Shown: positions 1,253 through 52,526 of the stretch, piece after piece
Position numbering within the stretch: the stretch's first letter is position 1
Layout of the letters: each line of letters starts with the position of its first letter
Source of the DNA: Lepidodermella squamata
Lineage: Eukaryota; Animalia; Gastrotricha
Direction: 5' to 3'
DNA length: 64,000 nt
NCBI GenBank assembly: GCA_047495785.1
Contig: JBLDXI010000002.1
Span: 1,922,001 to 1,986,000, forward strand
Notes under the pieces: generated by a model
What the model saw: only the letters and a program-made list of their open reading frames with translations
Database searches by the model: none
What the model was told of the DNA's origin: nothing
Translations under genes and position numbers: made by a program

Positions 1253-1787
1253 GGATTGAATGCTCAGTCCAAATCGATTCGACGCGACTGATCGCTTCAC
1301 TCAAGCCGCCGGCTACGAGAAAACTGGCTCCAGCTAGGTTATTTCGATGTTCGCAGTCGAAAACTATGAATCGACTTGGACTCTGAGCGATGATTGCCAA
1401 TGTTTCTAAATCCTTTGTCAGCAACAAAGCGGATGGTCGAAAAACAGCTTCGTTGAATTCTAAATCGTCTAACAAGGCTCATCCGGAGGCTTTTGTCGAT
1501 AGGGAGGGCGTTTTTGTAACGTTCCACTTCGTTGAGAATCTTATCAGGCGAGGCATCGCTCAGGTTCCAGAGTTTTCAGAGCGTGTTTTTAAAATTTCTT
1601 GCAGCAATGATAGCATGGGTTCAACGGTGAACAGGACGCCGATTGAGGTCTTGATTTTGGTTAGGAGGCGGAAACTAGTTTCGCAGGCCAGTAACATACT
1701 TGCCCACCTTGCACTGCCAATGTTCATCAGGCACTCGGTACATTCGACAATATTAGGCGATTCAACCGGCACAAATGAGGAGGCCAT
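1253..1787 (-). pseudogene. Frameshifted, 3'-truncated copy of the VTD-like/RING gene (closest to 40829-41962)
   Basis: ORF pieces MASSFVPVESPNIVECTEC..., MERYKNALPIDK... and ...FIVFDCEHRNN lie in three frames and match the 40829-42001 protein; there is no RING part. Confidence 0.9.
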
Positions 1788-2243: not shown

Positions 2244-5200
2244 GCTCAATTCCGGACCCCGCTTAGTTTCGTGCAGGGCGTTGGGGCTCTCAGATAAAAA
2301 TTTGAATTTTTGCGCAAATTCTTCACTCTTGTATTAAAATTTACAATAAAATATTTTAAAATATATTTATTTTTAATATTCTAAAAAATTAAAATATGTA
2401 TCCAAGAGCTACGTATTGATTGAGAAAAAGAACGAGTTTTCATAAGTCGGTGGCCTAAGTCCTGAAGTCGGCATTCGTTCTCTAGCTTAAATCTGTGAAA
2501 CCGTCCTTCACTATGCCTGAAGTTGAAGTAAGTGATGGAAAATAAATATAAGTACAGCTGCTGTTCCGGGAAAAACATCAAGTCTTTAAGACTAACATTT
2601 GTAAAAAGAGACAGAAAAGATCAAACTCGCCATATCTTTATTAGAGCATCGTATCGGATCATCAGAATAAGACATCAGAAAATGGAAAATAATAATTCTG
2701 TTCATATCACTGAATTTTACGCCGCTTAGCTTTGGCGATGAGATTTGACGCTAACCGCCTCTTTTGACTTTGGCTAGGCATGTGCGTAGTCTGAGGGCCG
2801 TGAAACGGCAATGAAGATCGAGTTAACCGCATTTCGCCCCCTCCTCCCAACTTGTTGAGGTCTGGAGGAGCCGGATGTGAACTTGCGGCGACTAGTTGCC
2901 GTTGGTTGAACTCTTATTCTAGCGCCCAATCGATTTTCATGATGTTTCGACGCACACTTTGCAAGGAAAGATTCCAAAGAAGCAGGACCTGCCATAGCTG
3001 CCTTAGCCAATCGAGTTGCAAATCGTTCAGCTTGTACATTCAACGATTTACTCTTACTAGATTTCAGTAATTCGACCGCTTTATTACAAGCAGCGGTAAA
3101 ACTGCCGACAGTTTCATCAGTTTCCACAATTTCGGGTTCGCATATCTCATCAACGGGACTGCTCAAAGCATTAATAGTTGGTACATCAAACTCCAACGGT
3201 ACCTCTCCATAGCTAGGCTTAAAAACCATTCCATCATTTGGCATGTTATCACTGAAGAAAGTAAGATCAGGTGCACTGCCACATGCGATGATTGAAAGTA
3301 GCTGCAGAACCTCAGGATCAGAATAAACAAGTTGATTCAGCGGAAGTGGAACTGAATGCTCCTCAGCAAGAGACATCTGATGCTTACAAACGCGACCGAC
3401 AGCGCCATATTTGCATGAACAAAGCCAATTCTGTAGATCAACAATGTAGACATCACCATTGCCGGTATTAATTTCGAATCGAAGATCGCCAAGTTGATGA
3501 CAGTATTCGATATCTGCATGACTTCTTCTGAGCCATTCAGTCTTCAGCTCACGGCGTCCAGTGGAAAAGTCAAGCAGTTTATCACGGAAAAATTCAGAGA
3601 ACGGCCCGACCATGTACTCCGCCAAGTCTACGGGATCGTAGGCTCGAACTCTGGACAAGATTACATCCTTAATTAAACCCACACATCGTTCGACGAAATT
3701 ATTGGTCAAATGTCCCATGCAATCAATGCTTCGGAAGGCGGCTACCCACTTTCGGTAGTCTTTCAAGTGCGAACAGAGGTATTCCCGTAACTTGTCGTTT
3801 TCCTGAACAAGGCTGTCAGAAAGAAGTTGAGCCTTGCGAAATTCGAATTCTTCCTTCGTTTGCGAGTATCCAACGCTATGGAAAACTGAAAGAACAAACA
3901 TTAGGTACCAAATAATTAATGGAATAATGAACTCACGTTCGAATATTCTGACCCAGCAATCCTGGGGTATATTATTCTTCCGGTTAATAAGCCATCGCCA
4001 AACGGCTTGTAGTACATGAAAGATGCAGTAGAATAATTTGCTGTTTGGAAAGGCCGCTCTAAGACCCTGTTGTTCCGCTTCGCTCATGTCGGTTAGAAAG
4101 CAAGCCACGTCGTCACCAAGAATAGCTCTCGCTAATTTGAAGACTTGTTTATAGCAATCTGAGTCTTGATTACTGTGTATGGCGACAACACAAGGGAGCG
4201 CTCCAGCGGAAGATGCCGAAACCAGCAGTGTAAGGGTACAATTTGTCAGATCAACACTCGCGGTCGAGTCAGCAAAGAGAAGTTTTTTAGCCTGAGCTAC
4301 AGAGAGAAGACGCGCTCCATCAGAGGCGTTTGGATTACCAATGCCCATTGCTTTCGGCCATCGTTTTCCCATATCTATATAAAACAACAATATAGAACCA
4401 GAAAGACATGAACGAAGTAGTTCGCTAACCTTCAACTTGCAGATCTTTTCATTTTGTTTGGCGAGTTTTCGAGCCTTTCGAGCATTGCATCTTCTGTTCT
4501 CTCGCCGTACAGACTTATAGTTTCCAAATCCTTCAAGTAGTACCAGTCCCGTTTTGTCGGGCAAAGAGACCGGTCCGCAGCTAGCACGGTCGGGTGAACA
4601 TCAGGATATTCAGCTTCAAGCTCGTTCCTGAAGCGCATCGAAGCCTGAGTAACACTTGTAGAAGTCTTCAACATTCTACGCATTCTTTCCTTAGCTTTTT
4701 CTGAGAGGTGCTTCCATCTCAAAGCAGTTCGACCAAAAACGCAGTGATTGTGGTTCCAATCAATCTAAATAAAGTATATCTAATGATTTTCATATCGGAT
4801 CAGAGCTACTCACTTCAAAGATAAGCGGTAACTGCTCATAGAAGCAGTCACGATATAAACGCATATCTCGAGCTCTGCGGTCCAAGCCAGATGTATCTGG
4901 AAGTTCTGTCAGAGTCAGTTTGGTTTTGCAGTTTGTAATTCTCCGCAAATGAAGTTCGACTTCATCGTCATCTTCCTTCTTTTAAGCAGGGGCATTGTTT
5001 TCCGACGCTGCTTTCTTTGAAACATGCTTCCCGGTGTTGTGAGCAGCACGGCTGCACACTCGTTTTACCTTCGCCTCCACCTAGTTTTAACAATTGACAT
5101 ATTTCGTTCGATAGAAGCAATCGTTCACCAACCTTAACACATTTCGGAGGCAGGTTTTGGCTAGTTGCCTCCTTAAACTCGCAATGTAACGATCGTTCGA

Positions 5201-38491: not shown

Positions 38492-39613
38492 TTACACGGT
38501 ATCAAATTGAGCGTGGAAAATAGCAACCACACGGGAATATTCTAAATCGGTTTGGCACACCGTTTCCGCTTCTTTCAGCTCCATGGGTTTGGAGCATCCG
38601 GTCCCCGGGCATCGAGGTAAAATGTCTTTGTCGATGTTTTGGACGAGAATGTATCCGCGAGAACACCCCATACACATGGAATGCTTTATGCAACTTGATT
38701 GCGGAAAAATATCGCCCATCGGAAGATTCTGCTTGCAAACGCTGCAGTAAAACGTCGACGCGCCGCCTGCAGCCTGCAGGCCTGCCGGTCGCACTACCTG
38801 AGACGGTTCCGGCGAATTATTGCTGGAGGAGGCCATTCGGCTGCTTCCCAGCAACGACGATAAGCCGGACAGGATGTCCGATCCGGACCACACCTCGCTA
38901 CGTCTCGCTTCTTCCAGTTTGCCAGAAAATTCTGGGTCCGTTTGTGCTAAACGGTTCGTCAGAGCGGAGACCAGATGTTCAAGGATATTGAATCTAAGAC
39001 GGCTCAAATCCAAATTGGGCAAATTCGGAATCCCGCCATTTTCAGAGGCGATGATATTAAGCCGTGTAACTTGAATCATTTCCTTGGCGGTCGGCTCAAT
39101 CCAAATCGATTCGGTGACGCAACCGATCGCTGCATGCAAGTCAGTGGCGATGTAGCAACATGCGCCCTCGCGATTGGCTCGCTTCTCACAGTCGAAAATC
39201 AGGTATCGGCTTGGGGTCTGAGCGATGATCGCCAGCGTTTCAAGACCTTTAGTCAGCAACAAAGCATGTGGTGTTTCCTTCTGAAAATCGTTGCCAATAT
39301 TGCGCATAACAGTAGCAGCAAAGCTCTTTCGAAGTCTCTCGTCGATTCGGAGAACGCCCCTGTAGCGTTCCACGTTGCTGAGAATCAAATCTGGGGTGGG
39401 ATCAATGAGGTCGAATTTAATTCCAGAACATGTTTGCAGAATGTCCCGCAGCAACGATGGCGTAGGTTCAATTCGAAATACACCAAGTGGAGTCGTTATT
39501 TCGTAGAGAAAACGAACTGCGGCTTCAAATGCGACCAGCTGACCTACCCATCTTGCACTGCCAATATTCGACAAGTAGTCATTACATTCGATAATAATAT
39601 TAGAAGAAGCCAT
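38492..39613 (-). CDS. Putative inactive tegument-like DUB (VTD/C76-like) + RBR-type RING1 protein, copy 1
   Basis: 373-aa intronless ORF; LLLTKGLETLAII...YLIFDCEKR..GACCYI; C-terminal Cx2C-x14-Cx2Hx2Cx2C-x17-CPx3C. The confidence given is for the ORF; the DUB-fold call is less certain. Confidence 0.8.
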   Translation of the reverse strand: MASSNIIIECNDYLSNIGSARWVGQLVAFEAAVRFLYEITTPLGVFRIEPTPSLLRDILQTCSGIKFDLIDPTPDLILSNVERYRGVLRIDERLRKSFAATVMRNIGNDFQKETPHALLLTKGLETLAIIAQTPSRYLIFDCEKRANREGACCYIATDLHAAIGCVTESIWIEPTAKEMIQVTRLNIIASENGGIPNLPNLDLSRLRFNILEHLVSALTNRLAQTDPEFSGKLEEARRSEVWSGSDILSGLSSLLGSSRMASSSNNSPEPSQVVRPAGLQAAGGASTFYCSVCKQNLPMGDIFPQSSCIKHSMCMGCSRGYILVQNIDKDILPRCPGTGCSKPMELKEAETVCQTDLEYSRVVAIFHAQFDTV

Positions 39614-40828
39614 CGTAATATATTCGAGTAATTATGAGATGTTTAGACTATTACCGTGAATACCGGAAGACGAGGTAAGGCAGCAATAAAGCGTAGAAAT
39701 GAAATAGAGGGCAGGTACATGATGTATATAGCATGAAGGTGCCTCTTTATCTTTCGCCGCACGTTATTTGCATCCTTATCATGTCTTTTGCACAGAGCTT
39801 CCTATAGTACCTAATCCGTAATTAGAAATGACCTATAAAAAGAGAAAAAGTGAGATTTTGATATCACTTTAAGGATCAATAAGCGAGGCTATCAACTATT
39901 AAAACGAAACCGATAGCCATCAGAGATGCTAGTGGTAAATGGTGCTTTTATCGAGCTATGACTCATATTATTACTGTGCGGATGAGAATTTCCGGCGACT
40001 CTGTGGGTTTTTCGTCTTTTAACGGGGTCCAAGTATTTGCAATTTTTTATTTCTTCCCTGCTCAGAGATTCCGATGAAACTGTCAGATTAACTTTTCACT
40101 TCAACCACCGGCTCCAACTTGCTATCGAGGTGCGGTTTCGATAAATACGATAGTCTTAAGCCTTAAGCAGAATAGAAACGCAATTCAGTTGAAGCGCAAA
40201 TTAGGAGGTTTGATTGTCTAAATTAAAGCAACACCTTGTGTATACACAAACTGTTCACTGTTCACCTAGCTTTATTTACACTAATATCAGCCAATAGATT
40301 TGAAAGCTCACCAATGATCATCAATCAGAGAAAATTCTTAGCGAAAATAGAAATTGCAAGGTCCGTAAAAATTCATCGACAAGGTCCGTAACAAATTGTA
40401 GTTCAATGAACCGATCGTTGAGATTGAGTGACATCGCCGTAGGCGGGTGGTTGGATATTGTCAACGCGCTGTGACAGATTCATCGGGCTTAATTCGGCAC
40501 GGCTCGTAACAGGCTTATCGCCTTTGTTAGCTGATACGTTTCATCGGCGATCACCGATCACCGCCACATCACCGATGGCAGATGGCCTAGGTGCGCATAG
40601 TGATTGCCTGGTAGCTACCATTTTTAGTGTCATAGGAATCTGCGCCGATGCTTATTTATTTGCAAAAATGATTCCGAAATAATCTTAATCATTCAAGTTT
40701 ATTAATGAGGAAATTCTGGGGATTTTTAATAAAATGACAATTTTTATGCTGCAAGTAAATTCGACGCATCATAATATAACCATAAATCAGATTTGAAAGT
40801 TACAATACATTTTTCATTATATGGAGTT

Positions 40829-41962
40829 TTAGTACGCATTGAAAGCAGCCTGCAACAAGGTAACCTCGTCCTCCAGGCACGCCAATTCCGCTTCTCGTAA
40901 TTCCATTTCTTTCGAACATCCGATGTTTGGAACATCCGTGGTATCAGGCCGATATGCGCACCTAGGCCATCTGCCATCGGTGATGTGGGAAATTACGAAG
41001 GTGCGAGCACACTGAAAACACATTTGATGCTTCGTGCAACTTGATCGTGGAAATTTAAAGTCCATCGCGATAATTTTCTTGCAGATGCAGCAGTAAAAAG
41101 ATGGCCTATTTGTTTGATAGTCAGCTGATATCTGCGATAATGATACAGGCTTATCGCTGTTGTTGGAAGAAACCGTTTCGGTTGATAGAACGGACCATAG
41201 GCCAGACAAGTTGGAACCCTTCAAAAGATCGGCTAGTTGGTTTCTCAGACGGGCTATTTCCGCATCCTTTCCTTGCAGAGATGCCTCAAGTTGAGCCTTC
41301 TCCTCCAGGAGGAATGAGTTATGCAGCCTGTTCAAATCCAAAGCGGGTAACTCTTTTGTCCCATTTTCGAACTCTGGCGCAATATTCAAGCCTAAGACTT
41401 GAATCTCATCCGTTGAATGTCCAGTCCAAATCGATTCGACGCGACTGATCGCTTCATGCAAGCCGCCGGCTACGAAAAAACAGGCTCCATCTCGATTATT
41501 TCGATGTTCGCAGTCGAAAACTATGAATCGACTTGGACTCTGAGCGATGATTGTCAGCGTTTCTAAATCCTTGCTCAGCAACAAAGAACAAGGCCGAAAA
41601 ACAGCTTCATTAAAGCCAGAATCGTCTAATACGCCTTTGAGCTTTGCAAGACTCATCCGAAGTTTTTTGTCGATAGGGAGGCCGCTCTTGTAACGTTCCA
41701 CCTCGCTGAGAATCTTATCAGGCGAGACATCGCTTAGGTTGAATTTGATTCCAGAGCATGTTTTCAAAATTTCTTGCAGCAATGATAGCGTTGGTTCAAC
41801 ACTGAACAGGACGCCGATTGAGGTCTTGATTTTGGTAAGTAGTCGTAGACTGGCTTCGCAGGCCAGTAATATACTTGCCCACCTTGCACTGCCAATGTTC
41901 TTCAGGCACTCCGTACACTCGATAAAATTAAACGATTCAACAGGCACAGATGAGGAGGCCAT
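40829..41962 (-). CDS. VTD-like + RING protein, copy 2
   Basis: Paralogous ORF with the ACG-ATG-GC start context shared by copies 1-4; coiled-coil-like linker LLEEKAQLEASLQGKDAEIARLRNQL; longer last RING loop. Confidence 0.8.
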   Translation of the reverse strand: MASSSVPVESFNFIECTECLKNIGSARWASILLACEASLRLLTKIKTSIGVLFSVEPTLSLLQEILKTCSGIKFNLSDVSPDKILSEVERYKSGLPIDKKLRMSLAKLKGVLDDSGFNEAVFRPCSLLLSKDLETLTIIAQSPSRFIVFDCEHRNNRDGACFFVAGGLHEAISRVESIWTGHSTDEIQVLGLNIAPEFENGTKELPALDLNRLHNSFLLEEKAQLEASLQGKDAEIARLRNQLADLLKGSNLSGLWSVLSTETVSSNNSDKPVSLSQISADYQTNRPSFYCCICKKIIAMDFKFPRSSCTKHQMCFQCARTFVISHITDGRWPRCAYRPDTTDVPNIGCSKEMELREAELACLEDEVTLLQAAFNAY

Positions 41963-42196
41963 CGTAAAATTTTCTGGAATGGGCTGATTATGAGAGTGCA
42001 ATTAGACAATGAAAGCGCGCTTATCTTTCGCCACTTTATCAATAATTATCAAATTTTGATAGAGTTACTTATATTAGCATCTCCACGCCAACCTGAGATG
42101 GTGTCAGACGTCTCGGCGGCTCTGCGGGTTTCTTGTCTGGATGGGAGATGGATGGGAGATGGATGGGAGAATCCTTTAGGTCTAAATCTACCCTTG

Positions 42197-42734
42197 CATT
42201 ATGCTTCCGTATTGCAGGATCAAAGTCCACGTTGTCACGTGGTATGAATAGCTAGTTCTGAGGCGTTATTTTTTTCGTTGCTTCGTCGTTTCGTCGTTTC
42301 GTCACTTCGTCATCTTTTACAAAAAAACTGACGAAAGAAAAAAAAACGGGGAAAAAAGGAGGATTCGAACCCGGAACCTTAAGGATCAGAACCATGGATT
42401 TAAGCCACTATACAATAGGAGGCTTTCTATCTACAACCGGCAAAAAACGCTTTAGTGTAGCGTTCGTTTAGTATATAAAAATGCCGAACGAAGATGACTA
42501 CCATGACCCAGCACTATTGCTCAGTGGTTTCGCCTTGTGCGTCATAACCCAATGGTCCCGGGTTCGAATTCTCCTTTTTCCCCGTTTTTTTTTCTTTCGT
42601 CAGTTTTTTTGTAAAAGATGACGAAGTGACGAAACGACGAAACGACGAAGCAACGAAAAAAATAACGCCTCAGAACTAGCTATTCATACCACGTGACAAC
42701 GTGGACTTTGATCCTGCAATACGGAAGCATAATG
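42197..42734. mobile_element. Palindromic MITE with CA...TG ends, ~170-bp TIRs and 2-bp TSD, carrying tRNA-like sequences
   Basis: CATTATGCTTCCGTATTGCAGG termini; TG duplicated on both sides; empty site in the paralog at ~1861-1876. Confidence 0.85.
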
Positions 42735-43333
42735 TGAACCTGGAAAATTATTACCAACGAGGAAAACTGCATCAGTGCGGATGAGGAGAACTATGAATCC
42801 TATCTCAGCTTTGTCAAACCCCACGTTTCTCTTGTCATCTGTCTTGGTTATGTAAAAATAATTTGCTCATTTTCTCATCATGATTCATCTTCAGTATGCC
42901 GATAGGATTAATGATTGAAATATCATTTTATTAAATTGAATCCATCGCATTAATCAACTCGGCATTGTCGACAATGCTATAACAAAAAGCGAGGTGTCCT
43001 AAGTTTGGATTTTCATCAAATTCGCCTGCGTCTTGCTGATCGCTGATCACCGAAACCAACTTCCGTGCCCGATCCGTGCGATCCGTGCCCGACTTTGTCG
43101 AGCTATTGCCCTAAAATGAAAATCCCTAAAAAAAAACTGCCATACATTTCGTCAATGCGAATGTTTGATTTTCATGGTAACTGCTATTTTGGCTATTAGG
43201 AATCTGCGCTGAGCTTTTTTATTCAAGAGTATGTTTATTGATACGTAATTTTCAAGAGACCTCCAAAAATTAGGCGAAACAATGAAATGAAGCGCATATT
43301 TTTCAGTCCATTGAAAAGCTGCGTTTTATGGTG

Positions 43334-44416
43334 TTACATGGTATCAGATAGAGCGTTGAAAATAGCAACCACACGGGAATATTCTAAATCGTCTTGGCAC
43401 ACCAACTCCGCTGCATTGGCCTCCATGAGCTTGTAACATCCGTGCTCCGGGCATCTAGGTACTTCGCCGTTGTTGATGCAAGACATAACAAATTTGCGAG
43501 CACACTCCATACACATGTGATGCTTTATGCAACTTGATTGTGGAAAAATATCACCCACGTGAACAGTTTTTTTGCAAATGATGCAGTAAAACGTCGACGC
43601 GCTGCATTCTGCTCGCATTCGCTGAGAAGGCGTTGGCGAGTTATAGCTAGAAGACGAGATTCCGCCATTTCCGATCAAATCCATTTCCGATAAGCCGGGC
43701 AGGCTCCCCGACACATCGTCAATTCGTTCAACGCGAGGAAATTCGGGATCTCTTTGTATTAAACGGTTCGTCAGTTTGATGACCAGAAATTCAAGAGACA
43801 TTATATGAAGGTTTCTCAAATCCAAATTGGGAAAATTCGGAATCCCGCCATCTCCAATGGCGATGATATTAAGCCCAGTAACTTTAATATCCTCGGCGGG
43901 CTGCTCGATCCAAATCGATTTGACGCGCCGGATCGCTGCATCTAAGTTAGTGACGATATAGCAACACGCTCCATTGCGATTGGCTCGCTTCTCACAATCG
44001 AAAACCAGACATCGGCTGGGACTCTGGGCGATGATTACCAGCGTTTCTAGACCGTTATTCAGCAGCAATGCATAAGTTGTTTCCTTTTGGCGAACATTGC
44101 CAGTACCGCGTATTAGAGCAGCAAAGCTCATGCGAAGTGCTTCGTCGATTCGGAGAGCGGCCTTGTAGCGTTCCAAGTTGCTGAGAATCAAATCTGGGGT
44201 GGGATTATTTAGGTCGAACTTGATACCAGAGCAAGTACTCAAAATGTCCCCTAGCAACGATGGCGTGGGGTCAATTCGAAACACACCAAGTGGGGTCGGT
44301 ATTTCGCACAGAAAACGAAGTGCGGCTTCAAATGCGACCAGCTGACCTGTCCATCTTGCGCTGCCAATATTCGACAAGAAATCGTTGCATTCGATAATAA
44401 TATTAGAAGAAGCCAT
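43334..44416 (-). CDS. VTD-like + RING protein, copy 3
   Basis: Paralogous ORF from MASSNIIIEC; FDCEKR; CIIC...CIKHHMCMEC...CPEHGC. Confidence 0.8.
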   Translation of the reverse strand: MASSNIIIECNDFLSNIGSARWTGQLVAFEAALRFLCEIPTPLGVFRIDPTPSLLGDILSTCSGIKFDLNNPTPDLILSNLERYKAALRIDEALRMSFAALIRGTGNVRQKETTYALLLNNGLETLVIIAQSPSRCLVFDCEKRANRNGACCYIVTNLDAAIRRVKSIWIEQPAEDIKVTGLNIIAIGDGGIPNFPNLDLRNLHIMSLEFLVIKLTNRLIQRDPEFPRVERIDDVSGSLPGLSEMDLIGNGGISSSSYNSPTPSQRMRAECSASTFYCIICKKTVHVGDIFPQSSCIKHHMCMECARKFVMSCINNGEVPRCPEHGCYKLMEANAAELVCQDDLEYSRVVAIFNALSDTM

Positions 44417-45292
44417 CGTAATACTTGAGAAGAGTCTTATTATAATGACCGTGTAGTTCGAGGTATTAAAGCAGCAATAAATGGCAGAACTGAAATGGGG
44501 GGTGGAAAGGGGCAGGTATTTAGGCGCGCCCTTATCTTTCGGCTTACGCATCTTACGCCTTGTCATGTCTTTTGCACAGAGCCTTCTATTATAATTTATA
44601 ATCCACAACTAAAAATGACTGTTCAAAAAAAGAAAAAGGTGTTGGTGATGGTGGTCTAAACATCGAAAATTGAAATTTTGTAAAAGCTAGAAAATTGAAT
44701 TGATACTTTCCAAGTCCTTACTTTCAGCAAGCATCGAAAAATTTGCTAAACCCCACTTTTCACTTGTCTTGTTTAAAACAAGATAATTTTCTTGATTCAT
44801 ATTGCAATAATTTCATGATTTATCTTCATATTATTCCAATATGATTCATGATTATAAGAGCATTATTTGATGATATCAATCGGCAAAAAATGAGCAGGCT
44901 TTAAAAATACCACCGGCCGGTTATCAAACGGTTATCAGGTCTGGGCCTTATTTTCAACTAATGATGTTGAAAATGGTAATGGTAAGGCGTCGTAGGCTAG
45001 CTTCAGAGGCTATAGCCTCTTACCAACCTGATGAATATAGGCGGGCAGGGCAATAGTAAATTACTTTTGGCAACCTTGCACTGCCAACGTTCATACTACC
45101 ACCTTGGATGTAGCTGATTAGAACAAGTTGCGGAATTTGCTGAAGAACAAATATCCAGCGAAGTAATCCGGCGACCGGCGACAGAAATAATCAAATCCGG
45201 ATAAAAATTCAATAATTGAATTCTCAATCAATTAGAAGAATAATAAAATTGAGAGTAATGCGTGAACTTTCAATTAAAATTGAAAGCATGCG

Positions 45293-47148
45293 TTACATGC
45301 TAGCAGGCTGGCTATCGAAAATATCTTTCAAGCGGTTTATTTGTTCAAAATTCTGACATCCCGTTGCCGCTTCATTGTACTTCAATCGCGTTGAACAGTC
45401 AAGACCCGGGCATCTAGGTACAACGCGTTTGTCGATGTGAGGCGGAATGTACTGGCGAGCACACTCCATGCACATATCATGGTGCAACTTCATGCAACTG
45501 ACTCGCGGAAAAATATCCCCCACCTTAACATATTGTTTGCATTTGCAGCAGTAAAACGTCGGCGCGGCAGCTCGCATTACCTGAGACGGTGTCGGCGAAT
45601 CACTGCTGGAAGACGCCATTTTTATATCTCCCAGTAAACCCATCGACGATATGGCGGACTGGATCGACGATGCGGTCAACACCTCGCCACGTAGAAAGCC
45701 GGAAAATTCCGCGTCTTTTTTTTCAATTGTTTTGCCAGAGTGACGACCAGATGTCCAAGGGACGTGACGTTTAACGTTTAGCTACAGTGGATTCACCAAT
45801 CCAATCGACGATGGCGAACTAACACGGTTTGTATACCATTAAATTTGATTTGACCCGCTTCATTTTCGAAATTGGAAATCCTGTAATTTTTCAAAATTCA
45901 TTAGAAAAATAATTTCTATCTCATGCTACTCGTATTTTTGTTACAGGTCGATTGCCATCGAGTGCTATCAGCGGCTGGCTGACCGCAATGTCGCCATCAT
46001 TCGCGACTTTTTTGTAAGAGATTATAAACATCGGCGCCGTAGCCGGAACAGATACCATCTGATAAAAGGTCACCCGTCCACCCCGGATATGCCGCGCCCC
46101 AAGCGCCGGCAATTGCTAGAATAAATTCGAAATTCGGAATTCGCATGTCGTTAACATTGGATAACATTGGATTTTTTCTATTAATTTTGTTAATCGCTCA
46201 ATTTACTCAGTACTCTCATACTCAACTAGGGCGAGAAAATGTAAATATTTCAACAAATTCAGCAAAAGCCGTGAGTCGCGCGCAAAACTGCATCGCATTG
46301 AATAATAAAATCGAGCAATAAAACGATAAAATTTCATTTTTCAATAAATTTGATTTGTAGTGTGTGTGCGCGTGTGTCTCATAAATGCTCCGCAGTTTGT
46401 CAAAAATGTGCGCAAGTTTGTCACAGAAAGGGATGGCCCAAAACGCAGTACATTCATGTTAACTATCTAGTTTGTCACAAATGTGCGCGATATCATATAC
46501 AAATCTGTTACAAGTTTAACATCGGTGTCTCGCCTTAAGGGGGCTCAACTCCAAATCGGGTAAATTTGCAATACCATTTCCATTGGCGATATTAAGCCCA
46601 GTAACTTAGATATTCTCTGCGCGCTGGCCATTCCAAATCAATTTGACGCGACTGATTGCTGCATCCAAGTCAGTGACGATGTAGCAACAGGCTCCAAGGC
46701 GATCTGCTCGCTCCTCACAGTCGAAAACCAGAAATCGGCTCGGGCTCTGAACGATGATCGCCAGCGTTTCTTGGCCGTTATTCAGCAACAAAGCGTGAGG
46801 TCGAAAAGCTGTTTCATCGATGTCGGTATTGCCAAACTCGCTTATGAGCTCAGCTAAGCTCATTCGAAGTGCTTTTTCGATTCGAAAACCGCGCCTGTAG
46901 CGTTCCACTTTGCTGATGATCAAATCAGGCGTGGGGTTCTCCAGGATGAAATCAATTCCAGGGCAAGTTCGCAAAATTTCCTGCATCAGCGATGGCGTGG
47001 GTTCAACGAAGCGTTTTCGCAATAAAGTTGTTATGCTGGGGAGAAAACGAAGGCTGGCTTCAAACGCGATAATTAGACTTGTCCATTTTGCTATGCGAAG
47101 GCTATGCAGACAATCGTCGCATCGAATAATAATATCATAAGTAGCCAT
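45293..47148 (-). pseudogene. VTD-like + RING copy 4, disrupted
   Basis: N-part 47148-46606 ends in a premature TAA; ~0.77-kb unrelated insertion at ~45771-46538; RING part at 45293-45682. Confidence 0.8.
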
Positions 47149-48580: not shown

Positions 48581-49959
48581 TCAAAATAGCTTTAATTTTA
48601 TTGAGTCGGACTGCACGTTCAGGCTCACAGCAATCTTTGTCTGCTTGATGAGTAGACTTTCGTGGACCAAGCAGTCCCACCTGTTGCGACACTTGCGTAA
48701 TACTTTGAAGTGAGCATTGATGTCAAAGCTATCAGGCAGTTTGTGTGTGGCCAGATGTTTGCCAATTGAACTCGAAGCGAGCTTGTGTTCCTCGACTCGT
48801 TGATGTAGGTGCCGCGTGGTCATCCCGACATAGCCAGCGTCACACTGGCCACATGAAAAACGATATACGACGCACTGGCGGTTTACGAGTTCAGGCTTGA
48901 TCTCCTTCGCTCCGAAATTTTCGATGATTTTCCGGCTTGTGAACATGGCCTGAACCGCCACCCGGAGTTTTCCAGAAAGATCGTTGAGCCTCATCTTGAC
49001 TTGTCGAGCAATTTTCCCGTCTTTGTAGGGTAACACAAAGCGTACAGGTTCGATCTTCGTCTCCTCAGTTTTTATACCATTGGGGTAGACTTTGTCAACA
49101 AATGATGCCAACAGCTTCTCAAACATGGCTAAAGGGTATTGAAGATTCAAAAAAGTTTTTCGCAGATGATCAACTTCCCTGCTGAATCCGAGCCATTCAC
49201 TGTTAAGCCGGTAGGCGCGATACAGCATGGTCTTGATGAGGCACGTCTTATACTTGGTGTCGGTGTGACTCTGGAAGTGCAACAACAGCCCGGTGTCCGT
49301 TGGTTTGTGGTACACCTCAGTCTTCAGAACCGACCCAGTTGTCTTCACGAGGGCACCGCAGAAAGCGATCTGGTTGTTCTGTTCAATTTCCATGGTGAAT
49401 TTCACCGACGGATGAAGACCGTTGAGTACTTCGAGGAAATGATTCGCTGCAGTTACGCCTTTCATGATAGTCAGAGTATCGTCAACAAACCGACGATAGA
49501 AAGCGGGCAGTTGTTTGCTCTTGCTCAGGCGTTCTTCCAGCATGCTCATGAAGGCATTGGCCATTAGTGGTCCAAGTGGCGAGCCCATCGCGACGCCTTC
49601 GACTTGGATGTATAAGGAACCATTGTAAGTGAACAGCTGATCCTTGACTGCTAGATTTAGCAACGTTCGCAGGTTGTCCTTAGTCAACTTGAGTTTATAT
49701 TTTCGGTTGAACCATCCGCCTCTGAAGGCTTTGTCCACGAGATACTCGATGGTTTCGGCAACCGGAACGTTCGTGAAGAGTGAAGTCACGTCGTACGAGA
49801 CCAGAATTTCTCCAGGATTCAGTTTCAAACCGTTAACTTCTTTCTCGATGAAATTCAGGATATCAGGTATCATCCTGTCATTCGAAGCGAGTGGCTTGAG
49901 AAGTTGATCCAGCCATGCAGCCAATTTGAAGTTGTAGGTGCCAGTCGCCGACAAGATCG
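48581..49959 (-). repeat. Inverted duplicate of the 3' ~1.4 kb of the Penelope ORF
   Basis: Reverse complement of ~51149-52526; identical protein from ILSATGTYNFK onward. Confidence 0.95.
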
Positions 49960-50019
49960 CCGACCTTGTTGTGCTTTTGTCTTTTACTGTAATAATTTCT
50001 TGTTGTGTTTTCTTTTGTT

Positions 50020-50060
50020 GTAGCCTGATGATGGTCCACGCAAGGACCGAAACGTCGCAC
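50020..50060 (+). ncRNA. Minimal hammerhead ribozyme in the Penelope pLTR
   Basis: CTGATGA-t-GGTCC-acgcaa-GGACC-GAAAC-GTC core. Confidence 0.8.
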
Positions 50061-52526
50061 GTTATAAATAAAGTTGTAATCAGAAGCAACTTGGTGTCGC
50101 TCTCTTTTTTGGTTAATCTGTACCCGACTCGGGTTTTCATTTCCTCACTGAAACGCGACAAAGATCTGGAACTGTTTCGGAGCATCGAGAACACGAGCAA
50201 GAAGCTGACCAACTGCATGCTCGCTATCGATTTCAACCGTTTGTGCCAAAACTTCGCCGTCACTCCGACGTATGCGCGGGTTTCAAGCGATAAAGCGGAG
50301 AGGTGGACTCAATCAAGTGCTACGTACGAACGAAACTGCATACAGGAAGAATTACAGTCGAAGCTCGAAACACTTCAAAGTCTCAGGACAGAATTTACAT
50401 CATTATTCAAAGTTGCTCGGAAGCGATGGAAGCCCTTCAGATACATGGTCTGCCTCGCTGTGATCAGCCGGCTACATTGGAAGCATTATTCAGATGCATC
50501 AGAAACGAACATCGAAAAATTTTCCAGATTAATTGAGCCGAAAATTGACGTCGACAAGCACATTGTGAATTTGTCAAACTACAGACTCTCCTTCTTCGAG
50601 AAACTGGCGTTATGCAGAGGCCTCAACTTCTCACTACCAACGAAAGTCACAAAACAGGAAGTGCTGGCCGCCTTCGAGAAAGGATACTGGCAACTGGACA
50701 AGCAACTAAACGACGAAAAGCGCCCCCTAGCTTCTTCTACGGTGAAGTCGATTGCATTGCACTATGCTGATGCGAAGTCCGACGCGGGCCCGCGATCCCT
50801 TCATCGCGCAATCCAACGACTGGCGAAACGTTCAGATATTGTCATAACGGAACCCGACAAAGGATCCGGAGTGGTGATTATGAATGCAGACGACTATCAC
50901 CGCCTTCTGCATGAAGCTTCAGTGGCCGATACGTCGAAGTTTGTTCAAATCAGCAGTGAACGACCTAGAATGCCCGGAAAACCTCCGAAGTATTATCATC
51001 CGCTGTTGGACCGTGAGAAGGAGCTCAATGAAGCAGTTGGTAACATTCTTCCAAAGGTCTTGGCAGAACAAGTAAGGAGCAAAGGTGCTAGGCTAGCTCA
51101 CCTCCGCGGGCTCCCGAAGATTCACAAGAATCCAACTGCTATGAGACCGATCTTGTCGGCGACTGGCACCTACAACTTCAAATTGGCTGCATGGCTGGAT
51201 CAACTTCTCAAGCCACTCGCTTCGAATGACAGGATGATACCTGATATCCTGAATTTCATCGAGAAAGAAGTTAACGGTTTGAAACTGAATCCTGGAGAAA
51301 TTCTGGTCTCGTACGACGTGACTTCACTCTTCACGAACGTTCCGGTTGCCGAAACCATCGAGTATCTCGTGGACAAAGCCTTCAGAGGCGGATGGTTCAA
51401 CCGAAAATATAAACTCAAGTTGACTAAGGACAACCTGCGAACGTTGCTAAATCTAGCAGTCAAGGATCAGCTGTTCACTTACAATGGTTCCTTATACATC
51501 CAAGTCGAAGGCGTCGCGATGGGCTCGCCACTTGGACCACTAATGGCCAATGCCTTCATGAGCATGCTGGAAGAACGCCTGAGCAAGAGCAAACAACTGC
51601 CCGCTTTCTATCGTCGGTTTGTTGACGATACTCTGACTATCATGAAAGGCGTAACTGCAGCGAATCATTTCCTCGAAGTACTCAACGGTCTTCATCCGTC
51701 GGTGAAATTCACCATGGAAATTGAACAGAACAACCAGATCGCTTTCTGCGGTGCCCTCGTGAAGACAACTGGGTCGGTTCTGAAGACTGAGGTGTACCAC
51801 AAACCAACGGACACCGGGCTGTTGTTGCACTTCCAGAGTCACACCGACACCAAGTATAAGACGTGCCTCATCAAGACCATGCTGTATCGCGCCTACCGGC
51901 TTAACAGTGAATGGCTCGGATTCAGCAGGGAAGTTGATCATCTGCGAAAAACTTTTTTGAATCTTCAATACCCTTTAGCCATGTTTGAGAAGCTGTTGGC
52001 ATCATTTGTTGACAAAGTCTACCCCAATGGTATAAAAACTGAGGAGACGAAGATCGAACCTGTACGCTTTGTGTTACCCTACAAAGACGGGAAAATTGCT
52101 CGACAAGTCAAGATGAGGCTCAACGATCTTTCTGGAAAACTCCGGGTGGCGGTTCAGGCCATGTTCACAAGCCGGAAAATCATCGAAAATTTCGGAGCGA
52201 AGGAGATCAAGCCTGAACTCGTAAACCGCCAGTGCGTCGTATATCGTTTTTCATGTGGCCAGTGTGACGCTGGCTATGTCGGGATGACCACGCGGCACCT
52301 ACATCAACGAGTCGAGGAACACAAGCTCGCTTCGAGTTCAATTGGCAAACATCTGGCCACACACAAACTGCCTGATAGCTTTGACATCAATGCTCACTTC
52401 AAAGTATTACGCAAGTGTCGCAACAGGTGGGACTGCTTGGTCCACGAAAGTCTACTCATCAAGCAGACAAAGATTGCTGTGAGCCTGAACGTGCAGTCTG
52501 ACTCAATAAAATTAAAGCTATTTTGA
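50028..52526 (+). CDS. Penelope RT + GIY-YIG endonuclease (start codon uncertain)
   Basis: SYDVTSLFTNVP, GVAMGSPLGP, RFVDD; VVYRFSCGQCDAGYVGMT..R..EH; uninterrupted frame. Confidence 0.95.
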   Translation: MMVHARTETSHVINKVVIRSNLVSLSFLVNLYPTRVFISSLKRDKDLELFRSIENTSKKLTNCMLAIDFNRLCQNFAVTPTYARVSSDKAERWTQSSATYERNCIQEELQSKLETLQSLRTEFTSLFKVARKRWKPFRYMVCLAVISRLHWKHYSDASETNIEKFSRLIEPKIDVDKHIVNLSNYRLSFFEKLALCRGLNFSLPTKVTKQEVLAAFEKGYWQLDKQLNDEKRPLASSTVKSIALHYADAKSDAGPRSLHRAIQRLAKRSDIVITEPDKGSGVVIMNADDYHRLLHEASVADTSKFVQISSERPRMPGKPPKYYHPLLDREKELNEAVGNILPKVLAEQVRSKGARLAHLRGLPKIHKNPTAMRPILSATGTYNFKLAAWLDQLLKPLASNDRMIPDILNFIEKEVNGLKLNPGEILVSYDVTSLFTNVPVAETIEYLVDKAFRGGWFNRKYKLKLTKDNLRTLLNLAVKDQLFTYNGSLYIQVEGVAMGSPLGPLMANAFMSMLEERLSKSKQLPAFYRRFVDDTLTIMKGVTAANHFLEVLNGLHPSVKFTMEIEQNNQIAFCGALVKTTGSVLKTEVYHKPTDTGLLLHFQSHTDTKYKTCLIKTMLYRAYRLNSEWLGFSREVDHLRKTFLNLQYPLAMFEKLLASFVDKVYPNGIKTEETKIEPVRFVLPYKDGKIARQVKMRLNDLSGKLRVAVQAMFTSRKIIENFGAKEIKPELVNRQCVVYRFSCGQCDAGYVGMTTRHLHQRVEEHKLASSSIGKHLATHKLPDSFDINAHFKVLRKCRNRWDCLVHESLLIKQTKIAVSLNVQSDSIKLKLF

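Follow-up and report, generated by a model that had tools for sequence, protein, structure and literature searches.

Here we describe a cluster of genes in a 64,000-nt stretch of the 121-Mb genome assembly of the gastrotrich Lepidodermella squamata. This stretch in its full length is referred to as the window, and all positions given without a contig or locus name follow its numbering. As predicted from their sequences, the encoded proteins are VTD-fold proteins in which two residues of the catalytic triad of this class of deubiquitinases (DUBs) are missing and which end in a lone RING1 domain of the type present in RING-between-RING (RBR) ubiquitin ligases. On balance, sequence comparison and structure prediction lead us to favour the reading that these genes are functional and encode non-catalytic adaptors or regulators, which would constitute an offshoot, composed of a dead VTD and a RING1, of an otherwise active family.

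Between 38.5 kb and 47.1 kb of the window five minus-strand open reading frames (ORFs) represent four gene copies. Copies 1 to 3 are uninterrupted ORFs whose products share pairwise identities of 46-68%. The individual features are the following:

38492-39613, minus strand: copy 1, intact ORF of 373 amino acids plus stop codon, comprising a putative pseudo-VTD domain, linker, RING1 and C-terminal helix
39044-39613, minus strand: predicted VTD-like domain (peptidase C76 fold) of copy 1, residues 1-190
39542-39544, minus strand: Gly24 of copy 1, by alignment at the site of the catalytic Cys of the active paralogs (SAC-T)
39185-39193, minus strand: Asp141-Cys142-Glu143 of copy 1, in place of Asp-x-His (FDSH in active paralogs, FDPH in Wc-VTD1)
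38762-39043, minus strand: linker of copy 1, residues 191-284, a short helical part followed by a Ser-rich segment that includes an internal MASSS
38591-38752, minus strand: C3HC4 RING of copy 1, resembling RBR RING1, residues 288-341 with eight zinc ligands
38495-38590, minus strand: C-terminal helical tail of copy 1, residues 342-373, corresponding to the helix that links RING1 and IBR in RBRs and followed by the stop codon
40829-41962, minus strand: copy 2, intact ORF of 377 amino acids from the conserved MASS start, with Ser at the nucleophile position and FDCEH
43334-44416, minus strand: copy 3, intact ORF of 360 amino acids counted from the common MASS start, with 68% identity to copy 1
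45293-47148, minus strand: copy 4, broken, with the N-terminal domain at 46609-47148 and the RING part at 45293-45682 in another frame
1256-1787, minus strand: remnant without RING, duplicated from the 5' half of copy 2 (85% identical at the nucleotide level) and frameshifted

The N-terminal domain had been assigned to the VTD/C76 type in a preliminary description of this DNA on the basis of its motif order, and all motifs quoted there (the A.EA..R.L helix, SLL..IL, LLL...ETL.II, FDCE and GA..Y) are indeed found in the ORFs. A Pfam scan of all window copies returns nothing for this domain and sub-threshold matches only for the RING; Herpes_teg_N is matched by a single paralog, weakly (E 0.026), and by none of the window copies. 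Likewise, copy 1 by itself finds no significant match among the PDB sequences. A profile built from ten family members, active paralogs included, retrieves Wc-VTD1 from Waddlia chondrophila (8ADB) at E 8.1e-5. It aligns the FD-x-H strand with FDPH of this enzyme (8ADB/8ADC) and the SAC motif with its KSAC, the latter stretch not being significant alone. Submission of the AlphaFold2 model of the copy 1 N-domain (pLDDT 65.8, pTM 0.72) to a Foldseek search of the PDB reveals entries of 8ADC, 8ADB, 2J7Q and 8ADD as the six best matches (E 3.5e-5 to 6e-3), headed by 8adc_B (E 3.5e-5, TM 0.52). These span Wc-VTD1, the M48 USP of murine cytomegalovirus and a zebrafish Helitron VTD, and are followed by a gap to noise. 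When the ESM Atlas is searched by shape, a Herpes_teg_N cluster ranks first with a TM of 0.61, all others staying at or below 0.32, and a language-model search with an active paralog gives 23 Herpes_teg_N clusters at 0.90-0.92. A feature search of the same resource with full-length copy 1 produced a lead below 0.9 to RBR proteins of Basidiomycota which we did not use as evidence. Judged by the profile and the model, the N-terminal ~190 amino acids are predicted to adopt the papain-like VTD/peptidase C76 fold, in agreement with the initial assignment.

The active site of VTDs is formed by a Cys and an invariant Asp-x-His motif, and mutation of any one residue of the triad abolishes the activity of M48, DrT1-VTD2 and Wc-VTD1 (Erven et al. 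2022, PMC9741609). At the nucleophile position, six residues ahead of the EA motif, copies 1 and 3 possess Gly and copies 2 and 4 Ser, and this position aligns with the Cys of SAC-T in seven paralogs of the same genome. Within the Asp-x-His motif the Asp is kept, while the His is exchanged for Glu (FDCE) in five of five window copies, the paralogs harbouring FDSH or FDPH. Since Cys and Asp-x-His define the VTD active site and the paralogs keep both, two out of three catalytic residues are considered lost. Both exchanges had been stated in the preliminary description, and the alignment to the active paralogs agrees with it. Thus, fold and sequence similarity link the window proteins to the VTD DUBs, while the catalytic Cys and the catalytic His are both missing. 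Around the former active site Glu30, Ala31, Asp141, Arg145, Gly150 and Ala151 are the same in the dead and the active clade of the alignment, as is typically seen in pseudo-enzymes which have retained ligand binding.

With respect to the C-terminus, the eight C3HC4 zinc ligands are invariant in the four window RINGs as well as in 16 RING modules of the paralog loci, and the Pro following the seventh ligand is near-invariant. The CPxxxC ending previously ascribed to copies 1, 3 and 4 is present in precisely these, copy 2 carrying a ten-residue insertion in this last RING loop. As best single-domain matches in the PDB a profile of the family RING yields RING1 of ARIH1 (37 bits, profile positions 3-77 aligned), of HOIL-1 (34 bits) and of RNF144A. 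A profile restricted to the window RINGs is too shallow to give significant PDB matches (TRIM32 E 0.035, RNF144A E 0.12), so the RING1 assignment is founded on homology within the genome and on the fold. The AlphaFold2 model of the copy 1 RING and tail (pLDDT 91.8) shows helices at 67-71 and 77-92, and Foldseek places RING1 of RNF144A first (1WIM, TM 0.73). The further matches involve HOIL-1, ARIH2, ARIH1, HOIP, RNF216 and parkin, almost all of them via RBR RING1 (8EAZ, 7OD1, 5TTE). The last 30 residues correspond to the helix found after RING1 in RBRs, and the ORFs end about 30 amino acids past RING1. By sequence and model, the C-terminus resembles an intact C3HC4 RING of the RBR RING1 type together with its trailing helix, just as had been read from the letters.

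Neither IBR nor RING2 is detectable in the ORFs or in the 64-kb window when four RBR proteins encoded by this genome are used as tblastn queries. This search matches RING1 positions only (best E 6e-7), so that the earlier statement on the missing domains holds as well. A weak Pfam IBR match in the RING part of copy 4 (E 0.019) is sited on the RING itself. While sequence and model place a RING1 in the window proteins, IBR and the RING2/Rcat with its catalytic cysteine are absent, and RBR transthiolation is therefore impossible for these proteins by themselves. In RINGs generally the residue at the C-x-[VI]-C position contacts the E2, and active RINGs are characterised by a linchpin Arg or Lys just past the last zinc ligand; RING1 domains of RBRs hold ubiquitin-charged E2 (E2~Ub) in an open, non-reactive state. 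Copies 1 to 3 possess Val or Ile at the contact position and Ser or Tyr, not Arg or Lys, after the last ligand, which fits a putative RING1 that binds E2 and does not activate it.

A six-frame search of the organism's own genome reveals a family of 13 members: five in the window, six clustered on contig C15 (4.03-4.09 Mb), one on contig C32 and a divergent one at C15:4.00 Mb. Identity to copy 1 amounts to 25-32% in the C15 cluster and in the C32 gene, and all seven keep SAC-T and FDSH; the window copies match the C32 gene, L005, at E 1.6e-29 over residues 25-371. The active-looking genes, L005 (C32:739085-743092) as well as L008-L013 and L016 (C15:4.03-4.09 Mb), encode a VTD, a coiled coil and a RING1. 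Within about 150-200 nt downstream of each of them lies a gene for an RBR ligase, in which two to five RING1-like modules precede IBR-RING2. In places a VTD gene and its RBR neighbour have near-identical RING1 modules (L016, 1498-1749 versus 2424-2675). In L005, VTD, coiled coil and one RING1 are contained in a single ORF which closes with TAG TGA, an AATAAA being located some 20 nt beyond, and a complete RBR gene with its own ATG (RING1-RING1-IBR-RING2) follows after about 185 nt; RING2 was seen in the linked RBR genes at L005 (2628-3554) and L015. In L009 on C15 a canonical phase-0 GT..AG intron (2134-2433) links the VTD exon to a RING1 exon which ends in a stop, the next RBR gene again having its own ATG. 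The common layout of the family hence consists of a VTD-type domain, a short coiled-coil or Ser-rich linker, one RBR-type RING1 plus helix, and a stop. Since the active paralogs also carry a lone RING1, this is the family norm and does not represent a second disarming. The term "double-disarmed", by which the window proteins had initially been characterised, accordingly goes too far, as the DUB half alone is disarmed. What sets the window clade apart is that Cys and His are gone and that no RBR gene lies next to it. The divergent member L029 (C15:4001454-4004990, ORF 1333-2730) has Tyr in place of the Cys, keeps FDPH and continues into RING1; from its sequence it appears to be an intermediate, "half-dead" state.

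In a phylogenetic tree the window copies are monophyletic (100/100) on a stem branch of 1.63 substitutions per site. A single dead clade on such a long stem implies one inactivation followed by tandem duplication. The ratio of non-synonymous to synonymous substitution rates (dN/dS) was calculated according to Nei-Gojobori with 1000 bootstrap replicates. It amounts to 0.31-0.36 for the dead domain (95% confidence interval (CI) 0.19-0.54), none of the 1000 replicates reaching 1; copies 1 and 2, separated by a dS of ~1.1, show a value of 0.31. The active clade gives 0.11-0.36, the linker 0.55-0.72 and the RING of the older pairs (1 vs 2, 2 vs 3) 0.37-0.41. The dead domain is thus under purifying selection, about twofold looser than in its active relatives. 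The preliminary description had called the family "diversifying", which would apply at most locally, to the RING of the youngest pair, copies 1 and 3 (0.95, CI 0.49-2.1); elsewhere dN/dS stays below 1.

Contigs from a public sequencing run of 2015 (X1) match copies 1 to 3 at 99% identity or more, namely at 38608-39390 (copy 1), 40706-41845 (copy 2) and 43227-44402 (copy 3). Over the intergenic DNA among these copies the run provides no contigs, while a DNA run (X2) does cover it. Coverage apparently confined to gene bodies is the pattern expected of transcripts. The contigs extend 123 nt (copy 2) and 107 nt (copy 3) past the stop codons and contain no splice joints. The check on splicing which the preliminary description had proposed thus speaks for its view, the RNA-like contigs reading through the stops without any joint to IBR-RING2 exons.

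That description had also spoken of four tandem intronless paralogs, which stands for the intact ORFs of copies 1 to 3 and fails for copy 4. The N-terminal ORF of the latter meets an in-frame premature TAA (46606-46608) within conserved sequence; beyond it the homologous frame continues for 27 more codons up to a second stop. An insert of ~841 nt separates the N-domain frame from the RING part. It is found nowhere else in the genome, and we rejected the idea that it is a repeat. The fifth copy, equally noted before, is borne out as the frameshifted remnant at 1256-1787, the upstream DNA of which (1870-2179) has been co-duplicated.

As copies 1 to 3 are intact and apparently transcribed unspliced, and as their dead domain is constrained, we take them as functional non-enzymes. 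Presumably, the common ancestor of the window copies exchanged Cys for Gly or Ser and His for Glu, with tandem duplication occurring afterwards, and the cluster would represent a young, lineage-specific branch of the 13-member VTD-RING1 family. Most likely, the dead VTD fold would still bind a ubiquitinated client or ubiquitin itself. With its zinc ligands and E2-contact residue retained, but with neither linchpin Arg/Lys nor RING2, the RING1 would hold E2 or E2~Ub without discharge. In this manner the protein would act as an adaptor, as a sequestering factor or as a competitor of active VTD-RING1/RBR pairs. Pseudo-DUBs are known to act as scaffolds or allosteric partners (PMC10919355), roles which the suggested adaptor or competitor function would parallel. 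A predicted complex of the copy 1 N-domain with the organism's own ubiquitin scored 0.00 with no alignment and no controls, and provides no evidence either way. This ubiquitin, encoded as polyubiquitin on contig C19 (L030, 1495-1722), differs from human ubiquitin in three residues (Glu24 to Asp, Asn25 to Ser, Ala28 to Gln). Three such changes are unusual for a metazoan.

Several observations weigh against a function of this kind. Run X1 is RNA only by guess, and rare spliced forms could escape its contigs. The dN/dS of the dead clade is about twice that of the active one, and the RING of copies 1 and 3 is near neutrality. With two of five copies broken already, the family is partly decaying. 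Moreover, no relatives outside this genome were found in our searches. In a set of 5.8 billion proteins there are no homologs for copy 1, for the active paralog L005 or for the family profile, and an exact-protein look-up does not have the window protein on record. The only match in a HMMER search of the N-domain against 1.84 billion representatives was a low-complexity repeat protein (P0001, E 1.3e-4), which we rejected as spurious. One might regard the genes as decaying, functionless duplicates of active VTD-RING1 genes whose ORFs are intact merely because they are young. The broken copy 4 and the remnant, dN/dS values above those of the active clade, the missing catalytic residues and the transposon surroundings, with MULE and reverse-transcriptase ORFs and a miniature inverted-repeat transposable element (MITE), would all be compatible with this. 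We nevertheless consider such decay unlikely, as copies 1 and 2 at a dS of ~1.1 retain full ORFs, all zinc ligands and a dN/dS of 0.31 whose CI excludes 1, and as RNA-like coverage is limited to gene bodies.

A somewhat better, though still minor, chance is given to the window proteins being working E3 ligases, in which the lone RING1 would activate E2~Ub directly while the dead VTD would recognise ubiquitin or the substrate in the manner of a chain-directed E3/E4. The invariance of the eight zinc ligands, the Val or Ile of copies 1 to 3 at the E2-contact position and the RING dN/dS of 0.37-0.41 for copies 1 vs 2 and 2 vs 3 argue for it. However, the best matches in structure and sequence are RBR RING1 domains, for which an open, non-reactive E2~Ub is established. 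In addition, Ser or Tyr follows the last zinc ligand instead of the linchpin Arg or Lys, and the last loop of copy 2 is interrupted by the ten-residue insertion. Very improbable is a hydrolase with a rewired active site, which would have to use the clade-specific Cys142 (FDCE), Cys10 or Cys152 (GAC). Cys142 does occupy the x of Asp-x-His in five of five copies, and Cys10 and Cys152 are likewise clade-specific and conserved. Yet the window N-domain contains no conserved His, FDCEH being confined to copy 2 and its remnant, and Cys142 is therefore left without a conserved partner. Ser at the nucleophile position occurs in two copies only, and single mutations of the triad are sufficient to kill M48, DrT1-VTD2 and Wc-VTD1 (PMC9741609). 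The RBR genes directly downstream at the paralog loci also bring to mind full RBR ligases assembled by splicing to downstream IBR-RING2 exons. This is the least credible of all alternatives, since the tblastn search with the four same-genome RBRs finds RING1 positions only in the 64-kb window, the contigs run 107-123 nt beyond the stops of copies 2 and 3 without joints, and the stop is located at the same position as in L005 with its double stop and AATAAA.

The non-catalytic adaptor or regulator, which we continue to favour, can be set against several known systems. With the Wc-VTD1 subfamily of VTD/C76, to which fungal and protist VTDs also belong (PMC9741609), the window copies have the predicted papain-like fold and the motif order in common, including a catalytic helix bearing the Cys position and a strand bearing Asp-x-His. 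The active paralogs possess the full triad of this subfamily, while the window copies differ from it by Gly or Ser for Cys, by Glu for His and by the missing Pfam Herpes_teg_N match at threshold. Inactive VTDs (iVTDs) have been described in insects, e. g. Drosophila CG32436 and CG4669 (PMC9741609). Similar to the window copies, these have lost at least one catalytic residue, are kept as host genes and are often multiplied. In contrast to them, they are of Helitron-type origin and carry tandem domains in one protein without a RING, whereas each window protein has one dead domain, the bacterial Wc-VTD1 as nearest solved structure and a fused RING1. The only published VTD-RBR association retrieved by our literature search is that of Agaricomycete fusions such as Si-VTD of Serendipita indica (PMC9741609). 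There, too, the VTD is physically joined to RBR zinc fingers, but these proteins combine an active K6-directed VTD with a complete RBR, whereas the window proteins combine a dead VTD with RING1 and linker helix only, complete RBRs being separate genes beside the active paralogs.

From RBR ligases (ARIH1/HHARI, ARIH2, HOIL-1, RNF144A, HOIP, parkin), with which they share the C3HC4 pattern, the long second loop, the CP after the seventh ligand and the trailing helix, the window proteins differ by the absence of IBR and of the RING2/Rcat catalytic cysteine. Described pseudo-DUBs, e. g. of the JAMM family (PMC10919355), are likewise DUB folds which lack catalytic residues and are retained under selection, and none of them is known to be of the VTD class with a fused RBR RING1. 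Judged by its sequences, the window family clearly derives from both the DUB and the RBR ligase families while possessing the full set of defining traits of neither. The initial claim that no animal family of such architecture has been described is weakened by the published inactive VTDs of insects and VTD-RBR fusions of Agaricomycetes (PMC9741609). What is new here is the combination of a dead VTD with RING1 only, within an offshoot of a known family and not a new kind of system.

Some observations concern the linker and the surroundings of the cluster. Just upstream of the RING, copies 1 (38780-38830) and 4 (45610-45660) contain an internal Met-Ala-Ser-Ser-Ser, which resembles the MASS N-terminus of the window genes and the starts of RBR genes (MASR.., MASSG..). 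A past gene fusion could have left this motif behind, or it could serve as an internal start yielding a RING1-only product. Between copies 2 and 3 (42197-42734) lies a MITE-like element of ~540 bp with terminal inverted repeats of 182 bp, the arms of which are 98% identical. It has 107 matches in the genome, many of them being the two inverted arms matching each other, and is missing from the duplicated region upstream of the remnant. Its activity must be recent, given full-length copies of 100% identity on contigs C7 and C34. The family is bordered by a MULE transposase ORF and by two overlapping reverse-transcriptase ORFs (2774-4564 and 48581-52526). We rejected a transposon-borne VTD of the Helitron or Helentron kind, as no Rep/helicase ORF is present in the cluster and the nearby MULE and reverse-transcriptase ORFs are separate elements. 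In this transposon-rich DNA the cluster is accompanied by ankyrin-kinase genes, two GT10 fucosyltransferases and a TENT5-like nucleotidyltransferase. The neighbourhood to kinase-ankyrin genes emphasised in the preliminary description is thus real, and a link to them is suggested at most by this adjacency.

VTDs were recognised as a class of DUBs only in 2022. The present family offers a natural series within one genome, ranging from active VTD-RING1 genes beside RBR genes via the loss of Cys only to the loss of Cys and His in genes which are under selection and apparently expressed, and it extends the association of VTD and RBR beyond Agaricomycetes. Its matched active and dead proteins may serve as test beds for a non-cleaving VTD fold and for a stand-alone RBR RING1. 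More speculatively, and with a rather small chance of being correct, the dead VTD-RING1 proteins might be dedicated trans-acting regulators of paired "erase/write" modules, each consisting of an active VTD-RING1 gene and a poly-RING RBR gene. Such regulators would keep the ubiquitin- and E2-binding surfaces, perhaps also coiled-coil pairing, and, without any chemistry of their own, would cap the active pairs or compete with them. If so, evolution would have supplied a VTD/RBR circuit with a dominant-negative layer, and the VTD-RBR partnership, so far known from mushroom-forming fungi only, would be older and functionally obligatory.

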